NCBI GenBank assembly: GCA_964035545.1
Contig: OZ037767.1
Span: 24,134,628-24,198,627 of the forward strand
DNA: 64,000 nucleotides
From: Bugula neritina
Taxonomy: Eukaryota; Animalia; Bryozoa
Direction: 5' to 3'
The position numbers were made by a program, and so were the translations under genes. Positions 5,609 to 62,000 of this stretch are shown here, in pieces. The notes beneath the pieces are model-generated. The model was given only the letters and a program-made list of their open reading frames with translations. It was not told the DNA's origin and made no database searches. Every line of letters begins with the position of its first letter. Position 1 is the first letter of the stretch.

Positions 5609-8600
5609 ATGTCCAGACTTCAAACCACACTACGTGATCTCAAAGATCTGAACGTGTACAAAGCTACCTTGGCTGAGTTTTTAGGAGTTATGTTGCTTGT
5701 CATAATTGGCTGCGCCAGCCCATATGGTGAACGTACCATAGATCACACAAGGATCAGTCTATCCTTTGGCATGAGTGTTGCGACTATCGTGTGGGTGATT
5801 AACAGCGTGTCAGGAGGTCACATCAATCCTGCAGTCACCTTAGCTATGCTTGTCACCAGGAAGGTTAGTGAGTTCTGAGTACATTTGAGAAAGAGTAGTG
5901 CATAGTATGACATAATGCTGTATATACTGTGACATAGTATTGGTAACTATGATGGTATAGAGTACTGTATAATATTATGATTTCGGTACTTGCTTTTCAG
6001 TCGAACTTCTTTTAATCTCTGTTTTCACTACATTTAGATTTTTAATGTGGGAATCCTTTCAACCATAGTCTTGTTTTTATATAAAATAGTCTTAGTCATA
6101 AAACCCTATAAATTTTTGCTTTATAATTATTTAGTTACTATAGCTTGTTGAAGAACGTTTGTACTAATCCTGATAGTATAATAAACAGTAAGTGCCTAAT
6201 TACTGGTAAAACCCTTGAACCTAAAATTGAACATGACTTGCATCTTACAAACACAAAAATATCTTTGTATAAATTCACCAATTAAATTATTTTCCATAAC
6301 TGCTTTACTAAGCCAGAAAGAATTTATGATAACTTCCATATTTTTTCTATCAGAAATTCTGTAAATCATCAAATCTGTTTATTAATCTCATAACATGGTA
6401 TTTCTTTTGCAGGGAGTGTACTAATTTGAAATCACAATGACTTGCAAAATAATAAAATATATAAAAGCTGATTAATTGTTGAGCTTCAACGGCATCATGC
6501 ATTGATTGGATCACACCCAACCAATCAGTGTTGAGTTGTTTTTTCCCTACAAACAATAGGATTCTAAATCTTTGCTTCTCGAATTAATAGCTTTCACCAA
6601 GATCCAGCTAGCCTTGCTCAATATAGTTATTTCCACTAACCAAAAACATAAAATATAATATTCTGCTCATGAGGTGTAGTAAAACTGCATCTTTGAATAT
6701 TGTATAATGATTATATAATATATACACTCGTCTAGCTTGTTTTTATTATTTTCTAATTCTTTGTCCAAGTTAAACAAAGAGAGTTGTAGAGTGGTGATGT
6801 GGATTATCTTATTTCTCTACTTTCTACATGAGTTAAGCAAATTAATTGTTGAAAGTAGAAGTTGAACCACAGTCGTAGCTTGACTCATTTATAAAGAAGG
6901 TGTTCGAAAAGAAAACTGTTACAAATTAAGTATAACAAATTAACTTTTATGTTGTGTCTAATAATTTGTTGTTATTGTGGAATATACTACGTATATAAGT
7001 TGTTAGAATTTTATATAATTCATTATTGAGTAATTTTTATGTAAGTTGTATTATTATTCTTATATTAGTGCTGTTAAATATATATTAATTCACCAGGTTT
7101 GAAGCACCATCTGAGTATTATTAAATTGACAGCTGCTAGCTATACATTGGCTTTTAGTAGAGCTAGTGGTGGTATCATCAGCAAGCCACGCTGTCGTCAA
7201 TAATAGCTGATGGTTGTACATTATAACATATACATAGTTATGCCTTGCTCACAATACTATACATACACACACCATGCTCACTTGATTCATGTAGATGTAA
7301 TCTTGTATGTTCTATCTATTTTTAAAACTGCCAAAGTAATACATTTTTATTTTTATTAGTTTTACGTGAATTTTCCCTGATAAGACATAAGTATGCATTA
7401 TAAGTATGTGTGAGATTATTGTATTTATATCAAGTGCATCACATGCATTTATATTACAGTTGCCTTAGAGCATCGTACACACTATTGTGTGTGTTTTTGC
7501 ATTATAACTTTGTTAGCTCGCTACTATCTTTGTAAAAAATATTTTTACCTGTGTTACCTAAAGCAGTTACAGGAAACAGTAAGGTATTATAGTGTATATA
7601 ATATTACTATTTCATTGTACTTTTGCTAAGCAAATTGTTTATAATGAAAAAACTGTATAACCTGTTTAGATCACTATGGTAAGATGCATACTGTACATCG
7701 GGGCACAAATGGCTGGCGCAATAATCGGGATTCTCATACTGAAAGGGCTCATATGTAACTGGCAACTTGCTTACAACACACGGGAACAGCTGAACATTAC
7801 CGAGTGTGGTTTGGGTAGGTTTATCGTGTCAGCTAAACCTTCAAACCACTCATGTAGAGCATTAGTAGCTAGGTTATAAGTTTTATGTAATGTCATTGAT
7901 TAGTGATTTGATTTTGCGATGCATTTATTGTACTGCAACAAGCATGCAGGTATGCAAATGCATATGAACTATATTACATACATGTATACTGATCACTATT
8001 CTGCTAGTATTTTAACTAGGTAAAGTTATTCTTTGGACGTCTTTAAAATAATGTCAAACTTGTTCTATATAAAAACATAATAATAGGCAGCCATACAATC
8101 CAAAGTTTTAAATAAACTACAAATCTATTTTTAAATTTTATTAGCTTCTCAGAAAATTAAAATTAGGAGAGTGTTTTTGTATGAGAAAATGCAGTTTGTT
8201 TGACATGAATTCTTCTTGCAGCTCTAAACACTCTTGGAAAAGAAGTAAGTCCAGGCCAAGGGTTTGGTGTAGAAGTGCTCATTACATTTATGCTGGTCAT
8301 GACAGTATTCGCCACATGTGACCAATCAAGGACGGATTTACATGGCTCTGGGCCACTAGCAATTGGCCTTGCAGTTACCATTGGCCACTTAGGATTTGTA
8401 AGTTTAACCTATACTATCCTATACCATCAACTGCTCATTTTACACTCTCAGACGTAGCTGATGCGTCTATGTGGTTGCTAACAGGTTCTGTAGATATAAA
8501 CTAGTCTGCAGGTAGAATTGCAGATATTTTCAGCTGGTTGCAGATAGTTACAGGTTGTGCAAGTGGTTGTAGGTGGTTGCAAGTGGTTTTAGGTGGTTGC

Positions 8601-31964: not shown

Positions 31965-34377
31965 TTACCAGTAACTCTTCTGGCAGAGAGACGAAATCGG
32001 TGTACTTGCTGCACACTTCTTTGAACGAAAACTAGAATCTCTTTTATCTATCTTCATGCAGTCATCATCGATGCGAAAATGCTTCATACTAGCGTAAGCC
32101 ATGTTTACTGGAGAGTTGTCGTCCCACATAAACACATCTTCCTTTCTGTAGCCCCCAAGTAAGATGAACTTAGCATTCCAGTCTAAAGTAGGAAATAGAA
32201 TCAAATGTCCCTGCTACCCACAAAGTACACTATTTCCTAAGTCTTAGCTATGAATACATATAACAGCTAATGGTCCTTGCTCTGTCAACACTTGCTAGTA
32301 TGGTGGAAGTAGTATTAGCAGCAGCAAAAGCAACAGTAGTAGTGAATAAACATTAACTTTGCTAAAACCAAATTATTTTCTCACTGTTTGCAACCATAAT
32401 TATTGCTGTTTGCCAAAAAAGTATTTTCACTGAGTATATATCAAGTGAAATGGAAAATATTTTGACTGCATGTGCTTTACAAAATCTGTGTTAGTTTAGC
32501 AGTAGTGGGGGGATAGAATATCATAGTAACCATCATGTTAAAACTGTATTTACTATCCACTCAATGGCACTATGTAATACTTGCTGAAGATCAACCAGGG
32601 TTTAACACTGCATATTACATGCAATATACATGTGCTATACAGTGTGAATAATTGTTGTGCAAAAGTTGAAATAAACCTGTAGTGTTGGCCCAAAAATCAA
32701 TTAACCAGCTCCTGGATTGGGTGGTCTTCAGCATTGCCAGTGTTCCACCTTTCATCTCACAGTTCAACTGAGCAACAGCATGATGCAACAATTTCTGTTC
32801 AAACCAGAAGCACTGGCCACTTGCAGGGTTTCGGATCCATCCATCATCACACTGAGGAGTTTCTGCAAGTATAAATGTACCGTCTTACTGCACTCAAGCT
32901 ATTTTATTTCAAGTTACTATAATGCATATGAAAATACACACGGACTAGTATACTTCCTTTTGCAAGTTTTTATATATGTTTTCTTGCAATAAATCTAACT
33001 ATTATGATTATTTCAACTCAATTGACCTTTTAATTATAAAGTTTGGAGTAGCTTTTGTTATACAATATATTTATTCTCACCACAGCCTATTACCTGCAAA
33101 CACTCAGGTTTTAAATCTTCTATACTTTTATACTATGCATTTTAAATAAATATTAAAACTATTATAGCTAAAATGTTTGAATTTTAATCAATTAGTTGTG
33201 AATGTGTTTCTATTGTTACAAGGATGTGCTACTTTTGTTTTACATAAGTATTACCTTTTCTATACAGATAAATGTTTTACCTTTGTTATACATTAAGTAG
33301 CCATAGCTGGCTGAGGAGTTAGCTATGTCAACAGAAAGGTGTGTTGAGAGTTGGCAAACTTTAGAATTAGCTGAGATGTTGACAGCAAATGCTTCACACT
33401 TCCTGCTGCTCAGACACAAAGCAGCGCACTCTATTCTACTTGCTGCCGAGACATTGACATACACATCCAACAACTTTCCACTTTTGGCCAAGACAAAGTT
33501 TTCTGTTATTTCTGCTTTTCCCAACTAGAAAAAGAGCACAGTTTAAATAACTAGCCTGCAGTTCTGAGTAATATAAACTGTTTGCACTACAGTAAAAAAC
33601 AATCAATATATAGTATTTTCTCTTTAAAAAGTAAAGTCGCAGGGAATTTTATTTGTCCTGTAAAATGTTATTTATATCTTTATGAATTTCTGGCAGCTCT
33701 CAATTTACCAATAACCTACATGTGATATTTTAGTGATATGTTTGTTATAATTGTTACATATTGAGACACTCCACTGTGTCGTTAAGTGAAACACCCTTTA
33801 AATATTGCAGAAGCTCAATAAAAATGTAAAATGTTTTTTCTAACAGGAAAGTGATCAAGTTGCGTGTTACATGCATCAGTGAAAAATAGCATGGAATGAA
33901 AATTTCCAATAATTACTAGTAGTTTTGAAATACCGCATAATTTAGAACCGACTGGAAACGTCATGTGCAAGTGAACAGAAATTTCCAATTATTTCAGCAC
34001 ATAGGTGCATAAAATTTATTATAAAACAAAGCTGTTTAAGGATACAACTTTAAAAAAGTATTTAGATTGATTGATTTATTTATTTATTGCATATCACAGA
34101 TATGAAAACATGTTGCAAAATTCAATGTAAATATAGGCCTACTGGCATTAATAACTAGACATGGACAAAAGTAAAAAAAAAATTCAGAGCTCTGTATAAG
34201 ATTATTTAAAATAAAAAAAAAAATATATATATATAATCTCACAACGGATTTTCAAGCAGTTGGACCTGCAGCAAATCCGGGTATAGTGTGGCCCTACGTT
34301 GCCTGGTAGCTTACCTTCAATGAGTGAATCCCTAATATAGCTGGAACCAGACAGTGTAATACCAATGAAAATTTCAT
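31965..34377 (-). CDS. Secreted PAN/apple domain + C-type lectin-like domain protein, 236 aa, 4 exons
   Basis: Exons: 34377-34315 (signal-peptide-like MKFSLVLHCLVPAILGIHSLK); 33524-33281 (PAN pattern ECAALCLSSRKCEAF...CQL); 32862-32677 (CDDGWIRNPASGQCFWF...AQLNCEMKGGTLAML); 32182-31965 (FILLGG...FMWDDNSPV...DCMKI...KKC...LCQK). Phases 0,1,1 are compatible. Confidence 0.88.
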
Positions 34378-37466: not shown

Positions 37467-40265
37467 ATGAAGGGAACTCTTGTTGAATTATTTAGACTGA
37501 TAGCTTTGGTGGGTTTAATAGGGGTGAGATTAGGTGCTCCGCTAACTCCAACCTCAAGACATGGTAAGTTTCTTTACTATATTATAGTGACTTCTGCCAG
37601 CCACTAGGTGAACCAAATACGAATTATTATATTATATTCCTAGTGCTTATCTTTTTGATTGGCGTTTAAATTTAAGCTTGACTACTTTTTTCTACAAGCC
37701 AACACCTTTTTATGCAGCAAGTTTTCTTAGAACTAGAGCTATTTAAAACAAATCAGCTTTATGCTTATCATTATAAATGCTTCACACTTGATAAGCTTAG
37801 TGTGAGAACCTATGCCATCTGTGCAGACTGTGCTCCTTGATATTATGCTATTTTATTAAATTTGTTTAGTCCTCTAGTAGTTTTATACGTATGACTACTT
37901 TTATATACTTTTAGCCAAATGTATCATTAAAAATACTAAAATTAGAAGAATCGAATTGAGAAACATTAACAAACAAAATGTATATCCTGTATATAGATAA
38001 AATTAATATAGAAATTGGAGCTATTTGAAGCTTGAGCAACTCGTTGTATTACTTATATGCTGACTTCAAACATTTCTATTGTGATTTCTATAGCAATTCC
38101 CAAGTATTGCAGCAAAGTAGTATAAAAATATTTCAATAGATTAATGCAGCAAAATATTGTTAAGTAATATATATATATATATATGCATATAATAATTATA
38201 TCAAAATGCGGGGAAATAGTAATTAGGTGTGGGCTTTTTACTATTAAGTAGATTTAAAATTCATAAATTGCTATAAATTGTAAATTTCATAACTGTGAAG
38301 AGGCAAGATTAATTTGTAAGTACAGTATAAAGCTTGTTTAGGAGCATTGCTTAGTTTGTGAAGTTGACTCTTTAAAGCAATCTAGTTTTTTAATTAATGT
38401 CAATTTTTATGACGTGGGAACTATAAAACTTTTGTAACATAATGTGCCTATAGTTCGCACTCTTAGCTATATATATAAAGTAATTGGATAGTTTATAGCA
38501 AACCCTGGTTAAAATTACATAAAAGATTAAATAAATTGTCATTATATAAATAACTTGTAGTGTGTGCAGTGTACAATTGATATATAAAGATATCTATATC
38601 AAGCCTAATTGCTAACTGACTCTAACGTTTGCGTATGACATATAACAAAGTTGTATAAATATTTGCTTGTGTTAACTTGATTTGCCACACTATCTTTTTA
38701 TGATGAATTAATATGCGTAGATAATTGAACTAAATGTTACACGGAGAAATTTAGCTATTCTCATGGGTTATATTTCCATTAGTCAAAGTTTTTTTTAGTA
38801 ATGAAATTAGAACGTTAGTAATTAAATATACCAGCTTGTAATAAGATTAGTAGAGATGAAAACCTATTAACTTTATCTTAAAAATTGTATTGATTTTTCT
38901 ATATAAACAAAAAGTTTTAGCACCAAAATATATTTCAACAAGTCTTTTTTTACAAGATGATTCCTGTTTTGAAATTTAAAATTAAAGTTTCGCTCAATTA
39001 AAAGTTTTTAGCTAATTTAGTTTGTAGTGAAATTAGTATATAAATATTTTGGTTAAATTATTTTAAATAAATACTTACAACTAATAACTGGTTAACTAAT
39101 AAAATTAATTTTATTTCTGTTATTTTTAATTTAGGGAAGATAATATTTTATCAGCAAAATACTATAATGTATCTTTCAATAAATAATTTTATGTTAGCTA
39201 CATATATTACTTTTATAGATTAATATTAAAAAATCTAAACTAAATTCATAATTTTAACTGTAATTTTGTAATACCAGAGTTCTTAATTGAATAATTTAAA
39301 CCAATCTTCTCAATTTCTATTATAAATACCTTTGCTTACAAGGCACAGTTATAGCTGAACCAGGAGATAAGAGAAGAAATATGTATACACAAAATGTCAG
39401 TAACTTGCTGACATAGTTGTCAACAAAGTGGGGATAAGCAGCATATGAAATTTCTCAGTGTGATCATTCATACACAGTGCTGGAAGATGCCACAGGCATT
39501 TCATAGTTGCATAATTGTTGTTTTAATTGGTCTTGCAAGTTGTTTTATAAATTTGAAACTCTAACATAGTACGGCGAAGTCGTTGCATCAATTTTTAATT
39601 GCAATTGACTGGAGATACACATACAGAACTTCAATACTGTGATCAAATGTGCAGTTAGAATAACAACCAAACTGTTTCTTTCACATTATTATAGTATGGG
39701 GTGCCAAATGGTAAAAAAATAAAGGTATATATGAGAGCAAATTATAGACCTATGAGAGCGTTTTGTGAACATATGGGAGAGAATAATGGCTAGATACTTC
39801 ATTATAAGCATATGAGATGATAATAAGCGAATTTTCTACCATTTGGCACTCCATACTCTAGAGTCTAGCTCCTCTTTCTATCTCCTTTACATAGTTGTTG
39901 CTCTTGTATAACTGTCCAGATGAAAAAATTAATATAACATATCATACTATTTGTAAATGTTTGATTAAGTGTAATATGTTTACTTGGTAGAAAGTCTGGA
40001 TGAAAATAACAAGCTTTTAGCCCAGATTCTGTCAGGAAAAAGCGACCAAGAAGAACATGGCCAAAATTTTGACCAAGATTATCAGGTTCCTAACACGGCC
40101 CTCTATGAAAATGATTTACAAGAGTTACAAGATATTATCTACAATAGAAATATCTTGAATGAAAAGATTGAACAATATTTGTATAGAGTTTTAGAACTGC
40201 AAGGGCAAGAAGGTTATAGCAGGTCATTTTCAAAAAGAGGAATATTTAGATTTGGTAAAAAGTAG
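37467..40265 (+). CDS. RFamide neuropeptide precursor (predicted GIFRFamide), 123 aa
   Basis: Exon 37467-37563 encodes a signal-peptide-like N-terminus (MKGTLVELFRLIALVGLIGVRLGA). It joins in phase 1 to 39991-40265, an acidic propeptide ending KR-GIFRF-G-KK*: dibasic cleavage site, Gly amide donor, dibasic end. Confidence 0.88.
39692..39858. mobile_element. Tc1/mariner-like MITE (167 bp) in the neuropeptide intron
   Basis: TIRs AGTATGGGGTGCCAAATGGTAAAAAA / TTTTCTACCATTTGGCACTCCATACT, flanked by TA on both sides. Confidence 0.7.
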
Positions 40266-40969
40266 ACATGAACTGTATTTTCAAGTGTTATAATATTTTT
40301 TTATGAATAATATTGAAATATATGTTGTGATTTGCATAGCATGAATATTATATTTTATTTAATAACCATTTTCCACTTTCAACTGCAAATGGGCAAAGCA
40401 TGATAGGTAAACAAGAACCTGAAATTTTTATGTCAAGTTTAGCTGCAAGCATCGAGCTGCTTTCAGGAGTTACTGATAAAACAGGCAAGCCCTTGTATTG
40501 TCCTAATTTAGTATGCCATAGAATATTGTAAGCCGCAGCCTATAGTTTCTACATATTAACTAAACTCTAAATAAAATTCATTTCATGTATTTGTTTTAAA
40601 TTTATTCTTATGCACTCTGGTCAGCCTGCTTAACATCCATCTATGAACAAATTGAAGGGTGCAAATAAAAAGTAAGTTTGACAAATTGGGTTAAATGAGT
40701 CATATATACAAATATTATTCTTTAGAGAATTTCTTCAAAGTTAATGCAAAACAAAATTTAGCTTACTGCAATACATAATATAATCTACCGAATTAGTAAT
40801 TATTAGTATATATTCAGTTGAGCAATGATGAAAATTAGCCAATAAAAACAGTGTTTACAAAAGCAAGGGTGTGCTGCAAGTATACATATAGTTGGAAATT
40901 GTGAAACTGGAATATGTAAAGTGAAAAGGAAAATATTTATTTAAAGCAATTAAAGTAGCAACATAAAAT

Positions 40970-41030
40970 TTAATAGATTGAATAATTAATGTTTTCTAGA
41001 CAAAGTGAGAAATATCCTCCAAAACATCCC
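40970..41030 (-). CDS. Alternative distal terminal exon 14B of the micro-exon gene
   Basis: Same acceptor (GGTTACAG|G) and phase as exon 14A. Encodes (K)GCFGGYFSLCLENINYSIY*, with its own AATAAA at 40941-40936. Confidence 0.7.
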
Positions 41031-42246
41031 CTGTAACCATAACAACACAACGAAGTATTAAACAGACTACTACAGTATAGAGATGATAATATTACACTAT
41101 AATTCATATTCATTGAGCTGTCAGATACAAACTCATTCAGTGGAGTTTTGTGCACTTGATTTGCAAAGGCTCTCAGTTATAATACAGTCACATGCATCAT
41201 TCTATTATTGTCTTTCCACTTTAATTTATTTTGTATGAACCTTTAACTAAAAATACATTTCCTTCTTAGCCCAGGTTCATTAGTTTCATTTAGTAAAAAA
41301 TTATGTTGAGTTATGAAGACAGATTTGAGGTTTGGCACTAATCCTGTTGGGGTTTTTTGTGTTTTTAAATAACATATCAGTAAAGTAATTCAGTTATATG
41401 AATTCAGTTTTCAATATTTTTTGATGATGTTAATATTTTATTTTAATATTGAAATTGAAAAATTTAGTAAAATTACAACTTGATATTTTTAAGGAATTGC
41501 AATGATTTTTCCTTATTTTTTGAACATACATTATATACCACACTGGTATCACGCTGTATATCACTGAGCTGGAATAGACCAGTAATTGAGTTCATTGCTG
41601 TATATGTGCAAACCCATTACAACAACTAACAGTCGATTCGCTGTATTGCAGTACTAACTACAAATCCACAATAGGTAAAAGTAATCGAACACCACTCTAA
41701 TGCATCTACAGCTGAATGCATAGCCTATATAGGTATAAGTCTCTAAGAAATACCCCGCATGCAGTATAACCCCAATATGTTGTATTTCTTTACACAAGAG
41801 TAATTATTATATGATTGTTTTGCTAGTGCAGCTTATAATGGCAGGGTCTGCATTATTGTTTACTTGATATAAGTACTCAAAAAATATGATATTTTAAATT
41901 AAGCTAAAATTGGAAATTTTGCACCTTTGTATTTCTACAAACAGAATAACTCTTGAAAGCAAACAGATGGTGAGTCAGATGTGTTTCAGTCATGAGATTT
42001 AGTTTGGAGAAAAGTTCTGAGAAAAACATAGCTTACTAATCGGGTGGTTGTGACTTCGAGCCTTACTGATGCTCACACCATATAGCCAGAAGAGCAGCAG
42101 GGTGGCATTAGAAGTCATGACTCTTGCGGTCTTGATGTGATAGCAGAGAAATAGCTTCTCTAGCAAGCTATGACTATGTCAGTAAACATCTTGGCCAGGT
42201 AAAAGAATTTTCTAAGTGACAGATCAGCCTTATTTCAAAAGACAAT

Positions 42247-42254
42247 CACACACA

Positions 42255-42342
<88 letters not shown>

Positions 42343-42366
42343 CACACGCACAAACACACACACACA
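42247..42366. repeat. (GCAC)n / (CA)n microsatellite between the duplicated last-exon blocks
   Basis: Direct tandem repeat. Confidence 0.95.
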
Positions 42367-42657
42367 TATATATATACACATGTGCATAGTAGTCAAAGCT
42401 AGTCACATCCAAATATTATTATTCTTTAGAGCTTTTCTGGAGAACAAAATTCAACAAGTTGCAATAAACAAGAGAATTTATGGAATTTGTATTTACTAAA
42501 ATATTATTCAGTTCAATTATGATGAATATCAGCCAATGAGAACAGTGGTTACAAGAGCAGGTGTGTGCTGTAAGTCTACAAACAGTTAGAAATAATAAAA
42601 CTGGATTGTGCAAAGCGAAGAGTAAAATATTTATTTAGAAACAATGTAAAATAAAAT

Positions 42658-43548
42658 TTAGTAAATTGCGTAGCTTATCTCTTTCATCCCGAGGGAGAAT
42701 TCTCCAAAACATCCCCTGTAACCATAACAACACAACTGAGTATATTTATCAGACTACTGTACAGTATAGAGATGATAATATTACACTATTCTTAACATTC
42801 CTTGAGCTGTCAGATACAAACTCATTCAGTGGAGTTTTGTGCGCTTGATATGTAAAGACTCTCATACAGTTATAATACAATCACATGCATAAGATTCTAT
42901 TGCTGTCTTTCTTTCTATTTTGTATGAACCTTTAACTAAAAATACATTTCTTAGCTCCTTAGCCTAGGTTCACCAGTTTCGTTCAGTATAAAAACATGTT
43001 GAGTTATCAGGACAGTTTCGAGGTTTGGCACTAATCCTGTTGTGGTTTGTGTGTTTTAAATAACATATCAGTTGAGTAATCCAGTTAGATGAGCTCAGAT
43101 TTCCATATATTTTGAATAAGTTAACATTTCATATTGATGGCTAGGTCTGTAGGTTGTTGCTCGTATTACAACTTTTTCTTTCTACTACAAATTGACAGAT
43201 CTAAAGAATAACATATGAGTAAATCTTACTTTCTAGCCTTCTTAACACCCTTCTTCTTCCCATTAGCCATCTTTTCGTCAAATTCAACTCTTTTCTCGAC
43301 TCTAAAAATCCGTTTATCTCAATGACGGCTTAAAATTAGAGACGTAAAGAAAATACTGCTTATTAATTGATTACAGTTTTCAAAATCAAATTCTATAATT
43401 ACCCTCCACAACTTTTGATTTCTTCGTCTGTGTTGACCCCTCTGTCTTTCTGTTGCACTTTGTTCTCATTCATCAAACTTCAAACACACAACAACTAATA
43501 TTTATAAATCTCATATTACTTTGTTATGTATTATTATATAATTCAAAG

Positions 43549-43634
<86 letters not shown>

Positions 43635-46600
43635 GTGTGTGTGCGTGCAGCATTGAAATATTAGGGAACACATAATAGATAGCAAAATATTTTTTAAAAT
43701 ATTACCTTGACACTTTCCACTCATACCAGTCCTGTATAAAATATAGAGAGCATCTATTACACTACTTCATCTACATGGTGTATGCATATAATTCAGAGAC
43801 AAAGTTGGCCTCAATTGAAAAATATGTTCGGATGTGCAGATAACAATAGTGGCATTTTCAGAACAGGTCAGATAAATACAATATAGAACTGTCCTATTTT
43901 ATGAACATATGAGGTTTTTCAGTGACACAAAAATCTAGCACATTACCTCATATGCATTCTATTATGTGACTAGCTAGCTAGTATAGTCACTTACAGGACT
44001 GCTAAGTGGGCAACAACTTTCTATAACAGCAACTAAAAGTCAGCTACAATTATAAATCAAATGAAAAGTTAACAGCAACAAACATACCTTAACCTGCTGC
44101 AGATAGTTAACCTGAGCCTTCAGTCTGAGAAACAATAAACAAGAGAAGACAATTAACTCGGACAAATTATTATATACCTATCACACACATGTTTATAACA
44201 GCATTGTAAACACTTTCATATATTTATATTTTTTTGGATGAATTAAGTTTCAAGCTCACCCTTTGCTCTCTTGTTTCATTCCTTTGACGTAGTTTTTGCC
44301 GATAGCCAGCTCAATCTTATTCCTCTGCAAAACACAAGTTATAATACAAATAGATAACAAACATTAATAGATGGTTGCAGTTAGTTTTGTAGTACATGAA
44401 GAGTGATCAGTGATCAGAATGTAACAAAGTAGTAAGTTGATAATTTGTCATTAGGATAAATCACTTGGTATATGAAATGTGGCATATAGATATGTTAGAT
44501 GGAGTAATTAGGTGAACGAGAGAATGTGATGTCCATGTAGTCAGCAGTGTTAGCTAAATACCATGACTCATAGACCCAGTCTCAAAAGTTAAACACTTTT
44601 ACTTACCATTAATCTCTTTTCATCTTGCTCCTTTGTTCTGTAGCAAAAATTAGAAACAAGATAAAACTTATTTTAGTGACAGAAAATTCAAAATATTATT
44701 AAAGCATATATACTGACAATGTTGTAAATACCTTGATTCATTTTATTTTCAACAATGCAAGTAGCTTTGGTAAAATCTAAAAGCTGTAATATTTTCAATT
44801 TAAGAAGTTTCACAAAGTCATAGGGGTAGCCAAAACATTCTAGCAATCTAGAAATTTAAATAGCTCAGGTTTCAAATGTTGCACAAAATTAGAGCCAATA
44901 AGCATTTCATAGTTGAATGTTGAATGCTGTTTTTAGTTGATTCTACTTGCTGCATCTCTAAATTATTATCTACCAGAGTGAGTATACCAACCTATATAAC
45001 TACTTTTGTATTACTCAAAAACATGACTTCACAAGCTTTATGAATAAACATTTTCAAAATCAAACATAGAAACTAATCGCAAACATCGGTTTTTGACTCA
45101 AGATCACAGATTTGAGCTGCCATATAGTGACAAATTTAATAGTTTTTACCAGTTTGCTTCAACACTGTCTAGACTTTCACCTGTTGAGTTAATTATATAA
45201 AACTTTTACACTTTTAATACAAACACAACTAGTGTTGTTATTGAAAATCTACAACTTACTCTTCCCACTTGGCTTTCTCTTTTTCATTTGCCAAAATGGC
45301 TTCGGACATCTCCGAGTTCGTCTTGGCACTATAAAAATTAAGATATTTGTAAATACCTATAGCAAAGAATAGTAGACGTGGTCTACACATTCAACTTGAG
45401 CAGTTGATATACGTTGAGATAGAAAAGTTTAGCAGGAATTATTACGATTGGGAACTGAAATGCATGAAAAACTCATTATTTTAAAACTGCAACTTGTTTA
45501 AAATTGATCCCACCACCTATAGGCAAGGCTAATTCAATCCGTTATAAAATTACTATTCAATAAGAACTTCACGTACCAATTGAACCTATTTTTAGAATGT
45601 TATAATAACTTACAGGGAATCTCTCTCCTCCATCATCTCAGCTTTCAGCTAAAAACGGTAAAAGATAAACAATAATATTTTAAGATTTGTAACAGAATAA
45701 CCTAAAATAGCACAATACTACAACTGCAGCTGGTGGACAATTGTTATCTCAGGTAATTTGATAATTAATGAAACCTCATAATAATCCTGTTTTGATATGA
45801 ATTCAATTTATTCACATTATTTACAAACATTAGTTTGAAAAAGTTTTATACCAGCAACTAATATAGCAGCCAGGCACAACTAATTATGAATAGCATTTTT
45901 ACCTCATTTATCTTCAAAGTAAAAAGCTTTTTTGTAATTTATTTAACACTAGTAGCACCGCCTATACTTGCAATAGTAGAAATTTTAAATAGAAGTAAAT
46001 ATTCTAGACTCACCAATTCCATCTCTCTCTCAGCACAGCGCAACCTGAAAAATGCTCACAGTATGAAATTTTAGCCAATAGAAGTACAGGCACAACAGAC
46101 AATAATAATTAACATTAGCTTTGGCAGAATAGTTAAGTTGCTACCCAAAACATTAAACAAATGGAGGTCTGTTCATTTCAGTCTGCAGTAACATACACAA
46201 TTAAATAAAGCCCTCTTCAATTTTAGTAAAGAAATATAGTTGTTGCACTATAATATGCTAATTCAACAAATAACTGGATATCATTCAATATTTTTATAAG
46301 CAGCTATATAGCTCTATGTTATGTTTTCAAGCATCTAGCAAATATACTAAATTCTTTTAAATATTCCAAAGACAAAAGACACCAATTGTATACATACAAA
46401 CCCTGTTTTTTTCAACATATGCACATGAATACTTTTTATCTAAATAACCAACTTACTTCTTGTCACCGAAAAAAAATTACCCCCACTGCGATTCAAACCC
46501 GATACCTCTGGCTTGCAAACAACATGGACTACCTGGTAATCACAACACTACACCCCACCCACTTCACATGAACTCCACTGGCCTCTCTACTACTCCTTCA

Positions 46601-48033
46601 GTCATCAGGTTATACTTACTTGTTCTTCAGTTCTTCATTTTCCATCTAAGAAAAGCAAGAGGAAGTTACACTAAAGTAAATACAATAAATTATTACAGAT
46701 TTAAACTCTTTTCTTGAACTGTTTTAAGTTTTCAACAAGGATTGCACACACCTATAGTATGTATATATATAAGATGCATGTAGTTAGTTGTGACTAAAGA
46801 TCTTATAAGTCTTGAGTTGTCTGGAGAACTTATTTTAATCTACAAACCTGCCATATCAAAACACAAGCAGTTATTGTTCTTAAATTGACATTAAAATTAT
46901 ATTATTTCATATCATATAATATAATTTTTTAATTGTCAAATGAGTAATAATTATAGATAAGTCAAAAATTCATTGCGGCATACAGATAACATATAATTTT
47001 TATTAGGACTTACTTTCATAAGATCTTTCTCCCTCTCCATCTCCTTCTCCATCTCTCTGTGCCATTTGAAAAGGAAATAACAGAAATTAATATTGAAAGC
47101 ATGGACACCGAATTAACACACCAATAGGCCTCACAGGGTTTAGTAAAACCTACTCTCTGTTTGCTGTCAGAATATATTTGAGTGAGAATCTTTCACAGTT
47201 TTTCCATGACATTAGGCTTTTAGACAAACAAGTGTTGAAAAAATTTAAAAACAACATATTTTATTCTCAATACGTGATATAATAATATATATTCTACTAC
47301 AAAAGAGATCAGTATCACTATATGATATGTTCTGTATTCAAATATAGCAGCACTCATGATATCACTTCAGCATATGTTAACCAGTCACTGCTTCTTACGG
47401 AAGAGAAATTACTTACCCACATTCCTCTATCAACCTCTTGTTCTTCTACAAAATCAATGCTAGAAATGTGGTTTGCTATTAATTTATTCTAACAATATAC
47501 AACAAGCTCTGCTATTAAGTAGCTTCCTTTCTCAAAAAAGTTTGCACTTTTTAATATGTCACACTGATACTTTCTGAAGAGCAAGAAGCATGAACAAAAG
47601 GTGAGGTGTTTGTGATGAAAATAGTAACAGTCTGCTATATAATGCAGTGCAGAAAGTATAGTGCATGTAAAAATATTATTGCCATAATTTGCAACTGAAA
47701 AATGTTTTATGCAATACACCAGAAAATGTTACCTCTATATTAGGTATGCTAATTAAGATTTAAATTATTTTGCTATTACTTACCACCCACAGATAAACAC
47801 ATATGAGCTCGCAAACAACTGAAAATAAAAAAAGCCCAACCCTTACTTTGCAATATAATGAAATTACAGAACTATTTTCATATGTTCCTAAGCTATGCAG
47901 TGTATTAGCGATAAAAAACAAGTTAAGGCAGCATGAATGAAATATGTTGAAGAAACAAAGATATCAAAGTCCAGTTAAAATACTCACCTAAAGCAGCAAA
48001 TAGAATAATTGCAATTATCAAAGTCTCACTCAT
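42658..48033 (-). CDS. Micro-exon gene: uncharacterised N-terminal transmembrane + coiled-coil protein, 207 aa, 14 exons (isoform with proximal last exon 14A)
   Basis: Exons 48033-47988, 47818-47784, 47445-47417, 47056-47014, 46645-46620, 46044-46014, 45648-45614, 45328-45260, 44637-44607, 44324-44260, 44124-44088, 43449-43403, 43301-43230, 42715-42658. All introns are GT-AG, all phases are compatible, and there are no internal stops. Protein: MSETLIIAIILFAALVVCELICVYLWVKNKRLIEECGEMEKEMEREKDLMKMENEELKNKLRCAEREMELLKAEMMEERDSLAKTNSEMSEAILANEKEKAKWEETKEQDEKRLMRNKIELAIGKNYVKGMKQESKGLKAQVNYLQQVKKDRGVNTDEEIKSCGGVEKRVEFDEKMANGKKKGVKKARKGCFGEFSLGMKEISYAIY*. Confidence 0.85.
43551..43630. repeat. (TA)n microsatellite
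   Basis: Uninterrupted TA run. Confidence 0.95.
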
Positions 48034-59000: not shown

Positions 59001-62000
59001 CATATAATGTCTGCTGAGAGAATGCTTCCAAAATGTCAGGCACTGCATAGTTGGATAAGGCTTTCTTTACATCCAAAGGAAGGAGGAAGTTCATAGGAGT
59101 GTTGATCAAATCTTTCACAAAACTTTGTCCTCTTGTATCAATTAGTTGACGGACAATGTAGTAGCTGTGAAAGAGAATTGTGTTAGCATATGAGTGCTAC
59201 TTAACTAGATCCTGGTAGAAAGTTTAGCTTATAGCAATGTTGTTCTCAGTGTATAACACCATGTTTGAGTGATCAACTGCATATCGTGTACTGTAATACT
59301 GTAATACATGTTATTGTAATGTAATTCAACAGATAAAACTGGGCATACTAAAGAAATAAACTCTCTAAGAATAATTTTTTACTAAAACTTATTTATATAA
59401 AGCTAAAACATTACTACTTATGCAAAAGTATTTGTCACAGTTATGAAGTACAACAATGGGCAGAATTGATTATCTGTACAGCTAGCGTTACAGGAACCCC
59501 TAAAAGGCTTTGTACTTGATAACTCAAAAAATACCAAACTATATTTATGTAATATATATGAAATATATATGCACATAACGCTACTTAAAATTTTCATATA
59601 AATTATTGCAATAAAACTGTTCAGGTTTCCTTAGAAGCTGTTGGTACAAAGTATTGTTCATCTAGACAACCAAACACAATAGAGTGCTAAACAGAGTGCT
59701 GTGGGTGTGTCAAGAGACCTCACCAGTAATTGGTTAATTTTGTCTTTCTTAGTGTGATTGTGTATCTCATACTAGGCCATGCAGTGTACAAAGAACTAGC
59801 TTTTTCAACAGTTTTAAATTTTCTTTAATGATTTTTCTAATAGCCAAGCAGAAGTAATTTGAAGAAGATAATACTCATAAAACATTATTTAATTATTTAT
59901 GACCAATTAATTAATTATTAGCAATTAAATTAAGGTTAACTTTGGCAAAAAGATATTTTGCACAAACTCAATCATAAAAGAAGATTTTTATAATTACCTA
60001 GGTTGCAGTAGGTTCCCGTGTTGCTGAAACATTTCCAATAGCTCTTTCAAAAGATCTTGAAAGTCAGTGTTACCCATAATGACTTCATCAGAGGCCTGTA
60101 CCAGAATGCAGTGTAGCTCAGCAACAAAGGCCAACATATCCAGTGACAAGGAAGATGGTTCTTCTATCAGAGACTTGAATGTTTCTATCAAAACTTCCAA
60201 ATTTCTGCGGAGATTTGCAGAGGAGCGTTGCTGAATCAGCTGTGAGCCCATGTCCTACACAGCAACAGAAATTCACATGAATTACTCAAACATATAAAAT
60301 ATGGATACTTGTATTTTATTCTTTTTTAGAAAAGTAAAACATAACTAGTTTTCATATTATCAATCTGAAATTTATTGTGAGAGAGGCATAAACTTAGACA
60401 TTGACTAATCACCATCCGCATATTACAAAGCAACCAATGAAATACCTTGTAACAATTGACTATCATACAAAGAGTTGGTAGGTAATGATTCCCTCCAGCC
60501 CATTGACTCATAATAGAATTCAAGTATTGCTGAACATAATCTTCACTGGGACAGGCCATGAGCAGCTTTATGAGAAACGATCTCAGGACAGGCGTAGCGT
60601 CTATTACATCATTGGAGTTGAATATACTGAGGGTTTTCGTCGTGTCCTTGAAGGTCACTTGCAAGGTCAACCACTCAATGACTTCAAGTTCAGGGACAAC
60701 TCCAGGTAGAAAAACTAATTCAGCCACAAAGCTTTTGAAAAAGCTGTTGAGATGTTTTCTAAATCGAATCAACTGCTGCAGTTTTGAGGGACTGAAATAA
60801 AACCATGGCTGAAGTTAAGAAATGAATCAGGCGATAAGTCATTACCAAAGAAGCATAGGATGTTGTGCTACATTACAGAGTAGGTATTATAAGCTAAGCT
60901 TTATCTATTGAGTCATAGATCAGTTATTTATACATATAATTAAGACATGGAGTGAGTATAAAATTGATATATGAGGTAACTACGTAATTATTTCATGGAG
61001 TAAATATAAAATTGATATATGGGATAAGTATGTAATTAATACATGAGGTCAGTATGTTTTTACTCTAAATTATATGCAAAATTGTAAAATCACACTTACT
61101 CTATATTGTCACTTTCAGGGTCATACACGTATCTGTCAGGTACAACTCTGGTACACTGGGGGCAGCTATGTATCTCTTTCACACAGATATCACAAATAAT
61201 GTGTCCACACGGTAGCTTAGCAGGAGTATCCAAAGAGCTTGCACACACAGGGCAATTGGAAGGGCAGTTTCTACAACATATAATATAAATTACAAGTAAA
61301 TGTTTAAATAACAAAACAGAGATGCTAAAAGAGGAAATATTTGGTTTGCCAGATTTAGAAAACAATGAGCAAAACTATTTTGCTTACACATCTTTCTATA
61401 TGTAATATTTTTGACTGTGACTTGTAGCAAAATAATATACAACTATACATAATCTCCTTGCAAACTATAACATATTTACTACAGAAAGAAGCGTATTTCT
61501 AGTATGTTCTTACTCATAGAGATCACACAGCTCTTTCCTAAACACTGCTGAGATAGAAGATAATACTTCATCAAAAGATTGCTTTTGGTAAAACTGTCTC
61601 TTGGTCACTGCCTGTAATTGAACACCAAAATTATATTATACACCCTAAAAGTATATGACGAAGATATCATTATATAATAATATATTATATAGACCAACAC
61701 TGTTTGTAGGAAAAGATTTTACATTCTCACCTATTCTCACCTATCTCCGCTTTGTCGTGTTCGGGTAGCGGGAAGAAAACGATTTTATATGATATACTTA
61801 TTTAAAATAAAGAAGAAACAGTAGCTTTAAGATTGCAACTGAAGTCAAACAATTTCACTAGTAATTCTGGAAGGAAAATGTACCACTGCTAGCTTTAAAA
61901 GTAATTGGAAATTTTCAGTCTGTTGGTTAAATTTGAAATGACTTGACTATCCAGAACTGGCAACCAATAGTACAAGGTCTTATAGAGGAAAGTGAAAAGC

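Follow-up and report, generated by a model that had tools for sequence, protein, structure and literature searches.

Tandem homologous last exons in a lineage-restricted gene of Bugula neritina and the possible use of the distal copy

Introduction

In the bryozoan Bugula neritina, a gene on the minus strand, here called W, is followed by two similar short exons, 14A and 14B, either of which could close its reading frame. The question raised by this locus is whether the distal copy, 14B, is used as an alternative last exon of W or lies unused behind the resident one. A preliminary description of the same DNA had proposed that both copies are functional and are chosen by alternative splicing and polyadenylation. 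We examined the proposal in a window of 64,000 nucleotides (assembly GCA_964035545.1, contig OZ037767.1, positions 24,134,628 to 24,198,627 of the forward strand) and compared the two exons with their homologues elsewhere in the genome; positions are those of the window unless another locus is named.

The host gene and its product

The model of W, built from exon coordinates, follows one continuous frame over 15 exons separated by 14 canonical introns.

42658..48033, minus strand: host gene W; 15 exons, all with AG/GT borders; 678 nt coding, 225 codons

The preliminary description had given 14 exons; the 15 recognized here include those at 43731-43706 and 43477-43403. Read exon by exon, the product starts with a hydrophobic helix that has an uncharged N-terminus and is followed by KNKR, continues with a middle part of about 190 E/K-rich residues of coiled-coil-like character, and ends with the polybasic stretch KKKGVKKARK and a GCFG...IY tail. 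By its appearance the N-terminal helix is more likely a membrane anchor than a cleaved signal peptide.

All exons of W, together with their phases and splice sites, were kept in two paralogues, P2 and P3, and comparison of W with P2 and P3 over the whole codons of exons 1-12 (122-151 codons) gave pN/pS values of 0.25 and 0.36, respectively. Exons 8-12 of a W homologue of about 77% identity were also found, with a pN/pS of 0.25, in a metagenome contig of 2560 nt (L024, JGI sample 3300002729) that was reached via a 49-aa genomic ORF and that ends before the last exons. Since exons, phases, splice sites and pN/pS recur in P2, P3 and L024, the model is not a chance string of micro-exons, and W is, on the strength of this comparison, a real gene. 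As a separate observation, the exon-8 donor of L024 is GC in place of GT, and the contig implies that DNA of a related animal was present in that sample.

Pfam analysis of the four longest W exons, performed exon by exon, returned no match, and the exon-8 ORF, compared with protein representatives, matched a single 49-aa genomic ORF. When metagenome contigs were searched with a degenerate last-exon pattern, the 18 matches obtained were all due to chance, and no match was obtained in a word search that used the 61-aa ORF extending into 14B. W is an orphan and belongs to a lineage-restricted membrane/coiled-coil family.

Two terminal exons in the same frame

The 3' end of W and the elements that follow it on the minus strand are as follows.

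43230..43301, minus strand: penultimate exon (exon 13 of the preliminary description, exon 14 here), encoding ...MANGKKKGVKKAR(K), with a phase 2 end
42658..42715, minus strand: terminal exon 14A, 58 nt, with the type I tail (K)GCFGEFSLGMKEISYAIY and stop
42630..42635, minus strand: AATAAA 3' of 14A, signal and flanks kept in 5/5 units
40970..41030, minus strand: terminal exon 14B, 61 nt, with the type III tail (K)GCFGGYFSLCLENINYSIY and stop
40936..40941, minus strand: AATAAA 3' of 14B, read in the sequence

At its 3' border the penultimate exon reads ...GCT AGA AA/GTAAGA on the minus strand (the slash marks the border). This reading bears out the earlier claim that the exon ends in phase 2 and could be spliced to either copy through the same acceptor, the final 21 intron bases in front of 14A and 14B being identical. 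Both exons are in phase 2 and end at the same codon. Realignment reproduced exactly what had previously been counted by hand, namely 17 mismatches in 57 aligned nucleotides plus one 3-nt indel, which is in frame (TAT, Tyr), and six codons with purely synonymous changes (S, L, I, Y, I, Y) in front of a preserved stop. Each copy was also found to have its own AATAAA, as had been reported, at 42635-42630 and 40941-40936, and the Cys said to be added by 14B could be traced to a change from GGG to TGT (Gly to Cys).

A protein with the 14B tail would differ from one with the 14A tail by one additional Tyr, the Gly-to-Cys replacement and a different tail of nine last residues, and would be identical otherwise. 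The two exons are adjacent, share the same phase and have compatible lengths, as tandem homologous exon pairs do, and a kept acceptor, an open frame and a poly(A) signal are present in both.

Extent of the duplication and origin of 14B

The likeness of the two copies extends well beyond the exons. Positions 42417-43138 could be aligned to 40713-41447 with 78% identity over 751 columns (E = 4e-173), a similarity that is far beyond chance. The resulting units, A and B, of about 0.75-0.9 kb each, consist of the 3' part of the last intron, the last coding exon and the 3' UTR and lie 1.69 kb apart; outside the exon, the duplication takes in about 420 nt of the preceding intron and a further 260-470 nt on the downstream side. 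Besides the A/B pair, no other internal repeats of the gene region were found in the window.

42716..43138, minus strand: intron part of unit A, from the alignment to unit B and other units
42417..42657, minus strand: 3' UTR of unit A with the sequence downstream, at 97-98% identity with paralogue P2
42240..42390, no strand: (GCAC)n/(CA)n microsatellite where the spacer begins
41596..42286, minus strand: spacer, also present behind the single terminal exon of P2 with 86% identity
41031..41453, minus strand: intron-like part of unit B including the identical 21-nt acceptor region, from the alignment to other units
40564..40969, minus strand: downstream part of unit B, homologous to A until about 40713 and to P3 until 40564

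The block that W and P2 have in common spans 48674-41596 and comprises the gene, 14A and the spacer; it ends about 140 nt short of unit B. The homology of unit B is about 150 nt longer with P3 than with A, and no second terminal unit was detected at the paralogues within 2.7-7 kb downstream. As the W/P2 block stops before B and B shares the longer homology with P3, the 14B unit does not look like a simple local tandem copy. Judged from these homology limits, unit B would seem to derive from a paralogue-type 3' end that was copied to a place behind 14A.

Paralogues and tail types

In the animal's own genome (216 Mb) there are five terminal units, all of them within 510 kb on one chromosome (contig C3): 14A, 14B and one each at P2 (L013), P3 (L014) and P5 (L015). 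P2 and P3 are intact paralogues and P5 is a pseudogene, each with a single terminal exon. The tails fall into type I (G-MKEISYAIY), carried by 14A and P2, type II (G-LDDLAFKIY), carried by P3 and P5, and type III (C-LENINYSIY), which among the five genomic copies was found in 14B only. All five end at the same stop codon position, and their tail positions 2, 5, 7, 9 and 10 are occupied by residues of hydrophobic or aromatic character, so that the family pattern can be written as [G/C]-[M/L]-x-x-[I/L]-x-[Y/F]-x-I-Y-COOH, with variable intervening positions. The IxYxIY motif that the preliminary description had offered as a possible tyrosine-based signal did not hold for the family, as its first Tyr is Phe in the type II tails (LAFKIY). 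No Tyr of the YxxO type, with a bulky hydrophobic residue at +3, is fixed in the family tails, and the only invariant features are the hydrophobic pattern and the final IY.

The pseudogene P5 (G000:C3:24486500-24496499, minus strand) has a 4-nt insertion, an in-frame stop and an AT donor in exon 9, and has lost the 3' half of exon 14 by deletion; exons 1-6 had no recognizable counterpart in the 10 kb examined. Its acceptor and AATAAA are undamaged, and its terminal exon and 3' flank are intact and 93-97% identical to those of P3, a likeness that is probably due to recent gene conversion. Since a dead gene can keep a perfect terminal exon in this way, the intact state of 14B says little about its use.

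Gene conversion among the terminal units

Identity between the units changes abruptly inside the terminal exon. In all pairs, including those with P5, identity is 88-100% over the roughly 170 nt that precede the exon and over the head of the exon (GCFGGFSL). From the tenth codon on, units of different type are 50-60% identical in the tail codons and 65-84% in the 3' UTR and downstream part, whereas within types (A-P2, P3-P5) identity is 93-98%. The change-point between A and P3 gave a Fisher p of 6e-12, and A and P2 showed the reverse pattern, with 89% identity upstream and 97% downstream (p = 0.001). Over tail and 3' flank the pairs A-P2 and P3-P5 are 95-97% identical, with 89% identity in the flanking intron of A-P2 and 63% in the far upstream intron of P3-P5. 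These comparisons indicate that the units are mosaics left by recurrent gene conversion, the tracts of which end within the exon.

An intronic snoRNA was considered as the cause of the near-invariant 170-nt block and discarded, with no Rfam match there; two putative snoRNA guide complements occur in the genome at chance frequency and are absent from rDNA-like arrays. In the pseudogene P5 this block is conserved to the same degree, so that gene conversion accounts for it.

In the last ten codons, 14A (42658-42690, compared with L014 and L013) differs from P3 in 13 of 30 nucleotides, and the preceding 360 nt are 93% identical. This comparison, together with the exclusively nonsynonymous nature of the changes specific to types I and II (0 synonymous, 7 nonsynonymous), points to a fast, possibly adaptive divergence of the tail. 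Exons 13-14 of P2 (L013, indices 6007-6264) are nearly unalignable with W at the protein level (exon 13, pN about 0.57); frame and splice sites are kept there, and the polybasic run KMKKAKGRKMKK still precedes GCFG.

Constraint on 14B and variation in a second haplotype

Over the whole exon, 14A and 14B show about 8 synonymous differences in 11 sites and 9 nonsynonymous differences in 43 sites (pS 0.73, pN 0.21, Fisher p = 0.002). The preliminary description had regarded both copies as intact and conserved in appearance, and to this extent it stood, with intact exons that differ in a coding-like manner; intactness by itself, in view of P5, carries little weight. Changes could be assigned to the 14B lineage where types I and II agree, which yielded four synonymous changes, in the family-conserved S, L, Y and I codons, and three nonsynonymous ones, from Gly to Cys (two bases) and from Asp/Glu to Asn. 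Under neutrality, the probability of at least four synonymous changes in seven is 0.03-0.09. Changes specific to types I and II were 0 synonymous and 7 nonsynonymous (Fisher p = 0.07). All statistics of constraint on 14B are based on about 19 codons.

By these counts the 14B lineage has evolved as coding sequence. The signal may date from a time when 14B was the last exon of another gene, and the statistics do not fix the timing of the constraint, as it may predate the position behind 14A. Conversion from another copy is not what keeps the 14B tail intact, since the genome holds no second type III exon. Between types, tail codons differ by 43-50%, compared with 21-27% in the adjacent non-coding DNA (Fisher p = 0.006 for A-B, 0.002 for P3-B and 0.12 for A-P3). 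This excess would fit diversifying change at the variable positions and could equally be caused by homogenized or constrained flanks.

A search of sequencing runs with a 7.5-kb query, about 90% of which is intron (a composition that can hide small RNA), yielded one run, X1, of genomic DNA; its contigs cover the introns and carry no splice joints at 43230>42715 or 43230>41030, a result that does not speak for silence of either exon. The X1 haplotype carries three differences in 14B, a silent one at 40991 and two replacements, Ser to Ala at 40981 and Ile to Phe at 40978, in a contig that over 40748-41051 has 10 gap letters at positions unlisted within that span. In 14A there is one difference, at 42661, which is silent. 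In intron 5 of W, 46400-46599 reached a summed contig depth of about 3600x in X1 compared with about 100-700 elsewhere, a depth that marks this stretch as a high-copy repeat; ARAGORN called no tRNA in it.

Possible roles of 14B

The reading that we tentatively prefer, at a probability somewhat short of even, is that 14B is a distal alternative last exon of W. Transcription would then continue past the 14A poly(A) site, and the penultimate exon would be spliced to 14B (43230>41030), producing an isoform with the type III tail on an otherwise near-identical protein. Because the acceptors are identical and 14A is the proximal exon, splicing to 14A would be expected as the default, and the 14B isoform would be minor or regulated. 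The uncharged N-terminus and the KNKR after the helix would, by the positive-inside rule, leave the coiled coil and the tail in the cytosol, and polybasic stretch, Cys and hydrophobic tail may form a membrane- or partner-binding end that is swapped by exon choice. The intact exons, acceptors and AATAAA signals of both copies and the in-frame indel support such a use. It is further favoured by the reality of the gene, by the synonymous lean of the changes between 14A and 14B and on the 14B lineage, by the absence from the genome of another type III exon, and by the excess of tail-codon divergence over that of the adjacent non-coding DNA. Against it, a proximal exon that has the same acceptor and a canonical poly(A) signal of its own would normally prevail, P5 keeps a perfect terminal exon, the constraint may be a legacy of another gene, X1 has two amino-acid changes in 14B, and each paralogue has one terminal exon, which makes a second tail dispensable for the family.

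Nearly as likely is that 14B is an unused relic, a copied or left-behind fragment of a paralogue 3' end that now drifts and is seldom, if ever, spliced. Its coding-like pattern would have been gained in another gene, the tail of which was later lost or overwritten by gene conversion; with conversion rife among the units and breakpoints inside the exon, a former type III donor could indeed have been overwritten. The end of the P2/W block at 41596 and the homology of unit B, which reaches further with P3 than with A, are consistent with this origin. Disuse would also agree with the intact terminal exon of the dead gene P5, with the single terminal exon of all paralogues and with the two nonsynonymous variants of X1 in 14B as opposed to zero in 14A. 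What a drifting relic would leave poorly accounted for is that acceptor, 20 codons, stop and AATAAA are undamaged despite 7-8 lineage-specific substitutions and an indel, and that the substitutions of the 14B lineage lean synonymous. Moreover, with an acceptor identical to that of 14A, some splicing to 14B would be hard to avoid on read-through.

It is very improbable that 14B is a silent sequence reservoir, serving as a gene-conversion donor that reshuffles tail cassettes among the paralogues. The mosaic units, the conversion tracts with boundaries in the exon and the three discrete tail types would suit a donor of this sort, but the type III tail occurs in no paralogue, so that no conversion from 14B is on record, and a synonymous bias is unexpected in a silent donor. 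That W is no gene at all and its exons are open frames arisen by chance in a non-coding repeat, an idea encouraged by the error-prone stringing of micro-exons by eye and by the blank Pfam result, is effectively refuted by the comparison with the paralogues, as 15 exons with canonical borders follow one frame, lengths, phases and splice sites recur in P2, P3 and the metagenome relative at pN/pS of about 0.25-0.36, and the terminal unit, with only five copies in 216 Mb, is not a dispersed repeat.

Comparison with known systems

With regard to the preferred reading of 14B as an alternative last exon, the nearest analogue is the pair of KRAS exons 4A and 4B, which are likewise tandem homologous last coding exons encoding short C-terminal tails that differ near basic residues and Cys. 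The additional last exon of KRAS is thought to have been copied from NRAS exon 4 by exon shuffling (PMC9882654), and the extent of the 14B homology suggests a similar, paralogue-derived exon. Use of the KRAS exons is documented and has been conserved for more than 450 My, whereas the W pair is known here from sequence alone; in KRAS, 4A is spliced as a cassette with 4B downstream, whereas in W each exon has its own AATAAA. W belongs to an unrelated orphan family and has no CaaX box: its tails close with IY, and the Cys stands 17-18 residues before the C-terminus. The polybasic stretch beside the Cys resembles the membrane-targeting region of RAS-type proteins as a functional analogy only. It is conceivable, if unlikely, that the last ten residues constitute a swappable tail cassette, defined by its hydrophobic pattern, driven into types by diversifying selection and shuffled among the paralogues by conversion tracts ending within the exon, and that W carries two of the types as regulated alternative last exons, which would switch a membrane- or partner-binding end in the manner of KRAS4A/4B.

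Tandem duplicated alternative exons share with 14A and 14B adjacency, homology, the same phase, near-equal length and intact sites. Most of them are internal and mutually exclusive, whereas 14A and 14B are terminal and have poly(A) signals, and a choice between them would couple splicing to polyadenylation. The exon duplication itself is of an ordinary kind and represents no new one. Genes of the calcitonin/CGRP type have proximal and distal last exons, each with a poly(A) site, that encode different C-terminal peptides; there the terminal exons are non-homologous and their tissue-regulated use is proven, whereas 14A and 14B are homologous duplicates.

A resemblance of KGCFG to C-type natriuretic peptide (CNP) was also considered. 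In CNP the CFG is part of a ring of 17 residues that a second Cys closes, C-F-G-x3-[DEA]-[RH]-I-x3-S-x2-G-C. A tail of this kind was rejected: types I and II contain a single Cys, the second Cys of 14B comes 8 residues on, and both D-R-I and S-x2-G-C are absent.

Should 14B be used, it would be a young and unusually clean example of the birth of an alternative C-terminus, in which the last exon of a paralogue came to lie behind the resident one and had its splice and poly(A) signals from the start. The single-exon paralogues would then serve as natural controls, and the 10-residue tail would be the functional business end of an uncharacterized membrane/coiled-coil family. Should it be unused, 14B would be an ordinary partial duplicate.

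Neighbouring genes and repeats

Long (AT)n and (GCAC)n microsatellites lie at 43540-43650 and 42240-42390, respectively; the Rfam matches obtained in the region (mir-297 and similar) fall on them, far below the gathering score, and are artefacts. W adjoins a RING-finger gene, with a RING finger of generic type at 61096-61365. Of three upstream exons searched against the PDB, one gave only generic RING matches and two gave none.

Convergent with 14B, a 93-aa open frame on the plus strand (39984-40265) ends in ...SFSKRGIFRFGKK and stop, with a dibasic site, GIFRF, a Gly amidation signal and KK. Pfam gave no match for this frame, whose ending suggests the C-terminal exon of an RFamide-type neuropeptide precursor. 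On the minus strand, the next gene downstream, with exons at 33240-33524 and 31965-32204 (both minus), has a PAN/Apple-domain exon (PF00024, 22.8 bits, cut-off 21.4) and a weak C-type-lectin-like exon.
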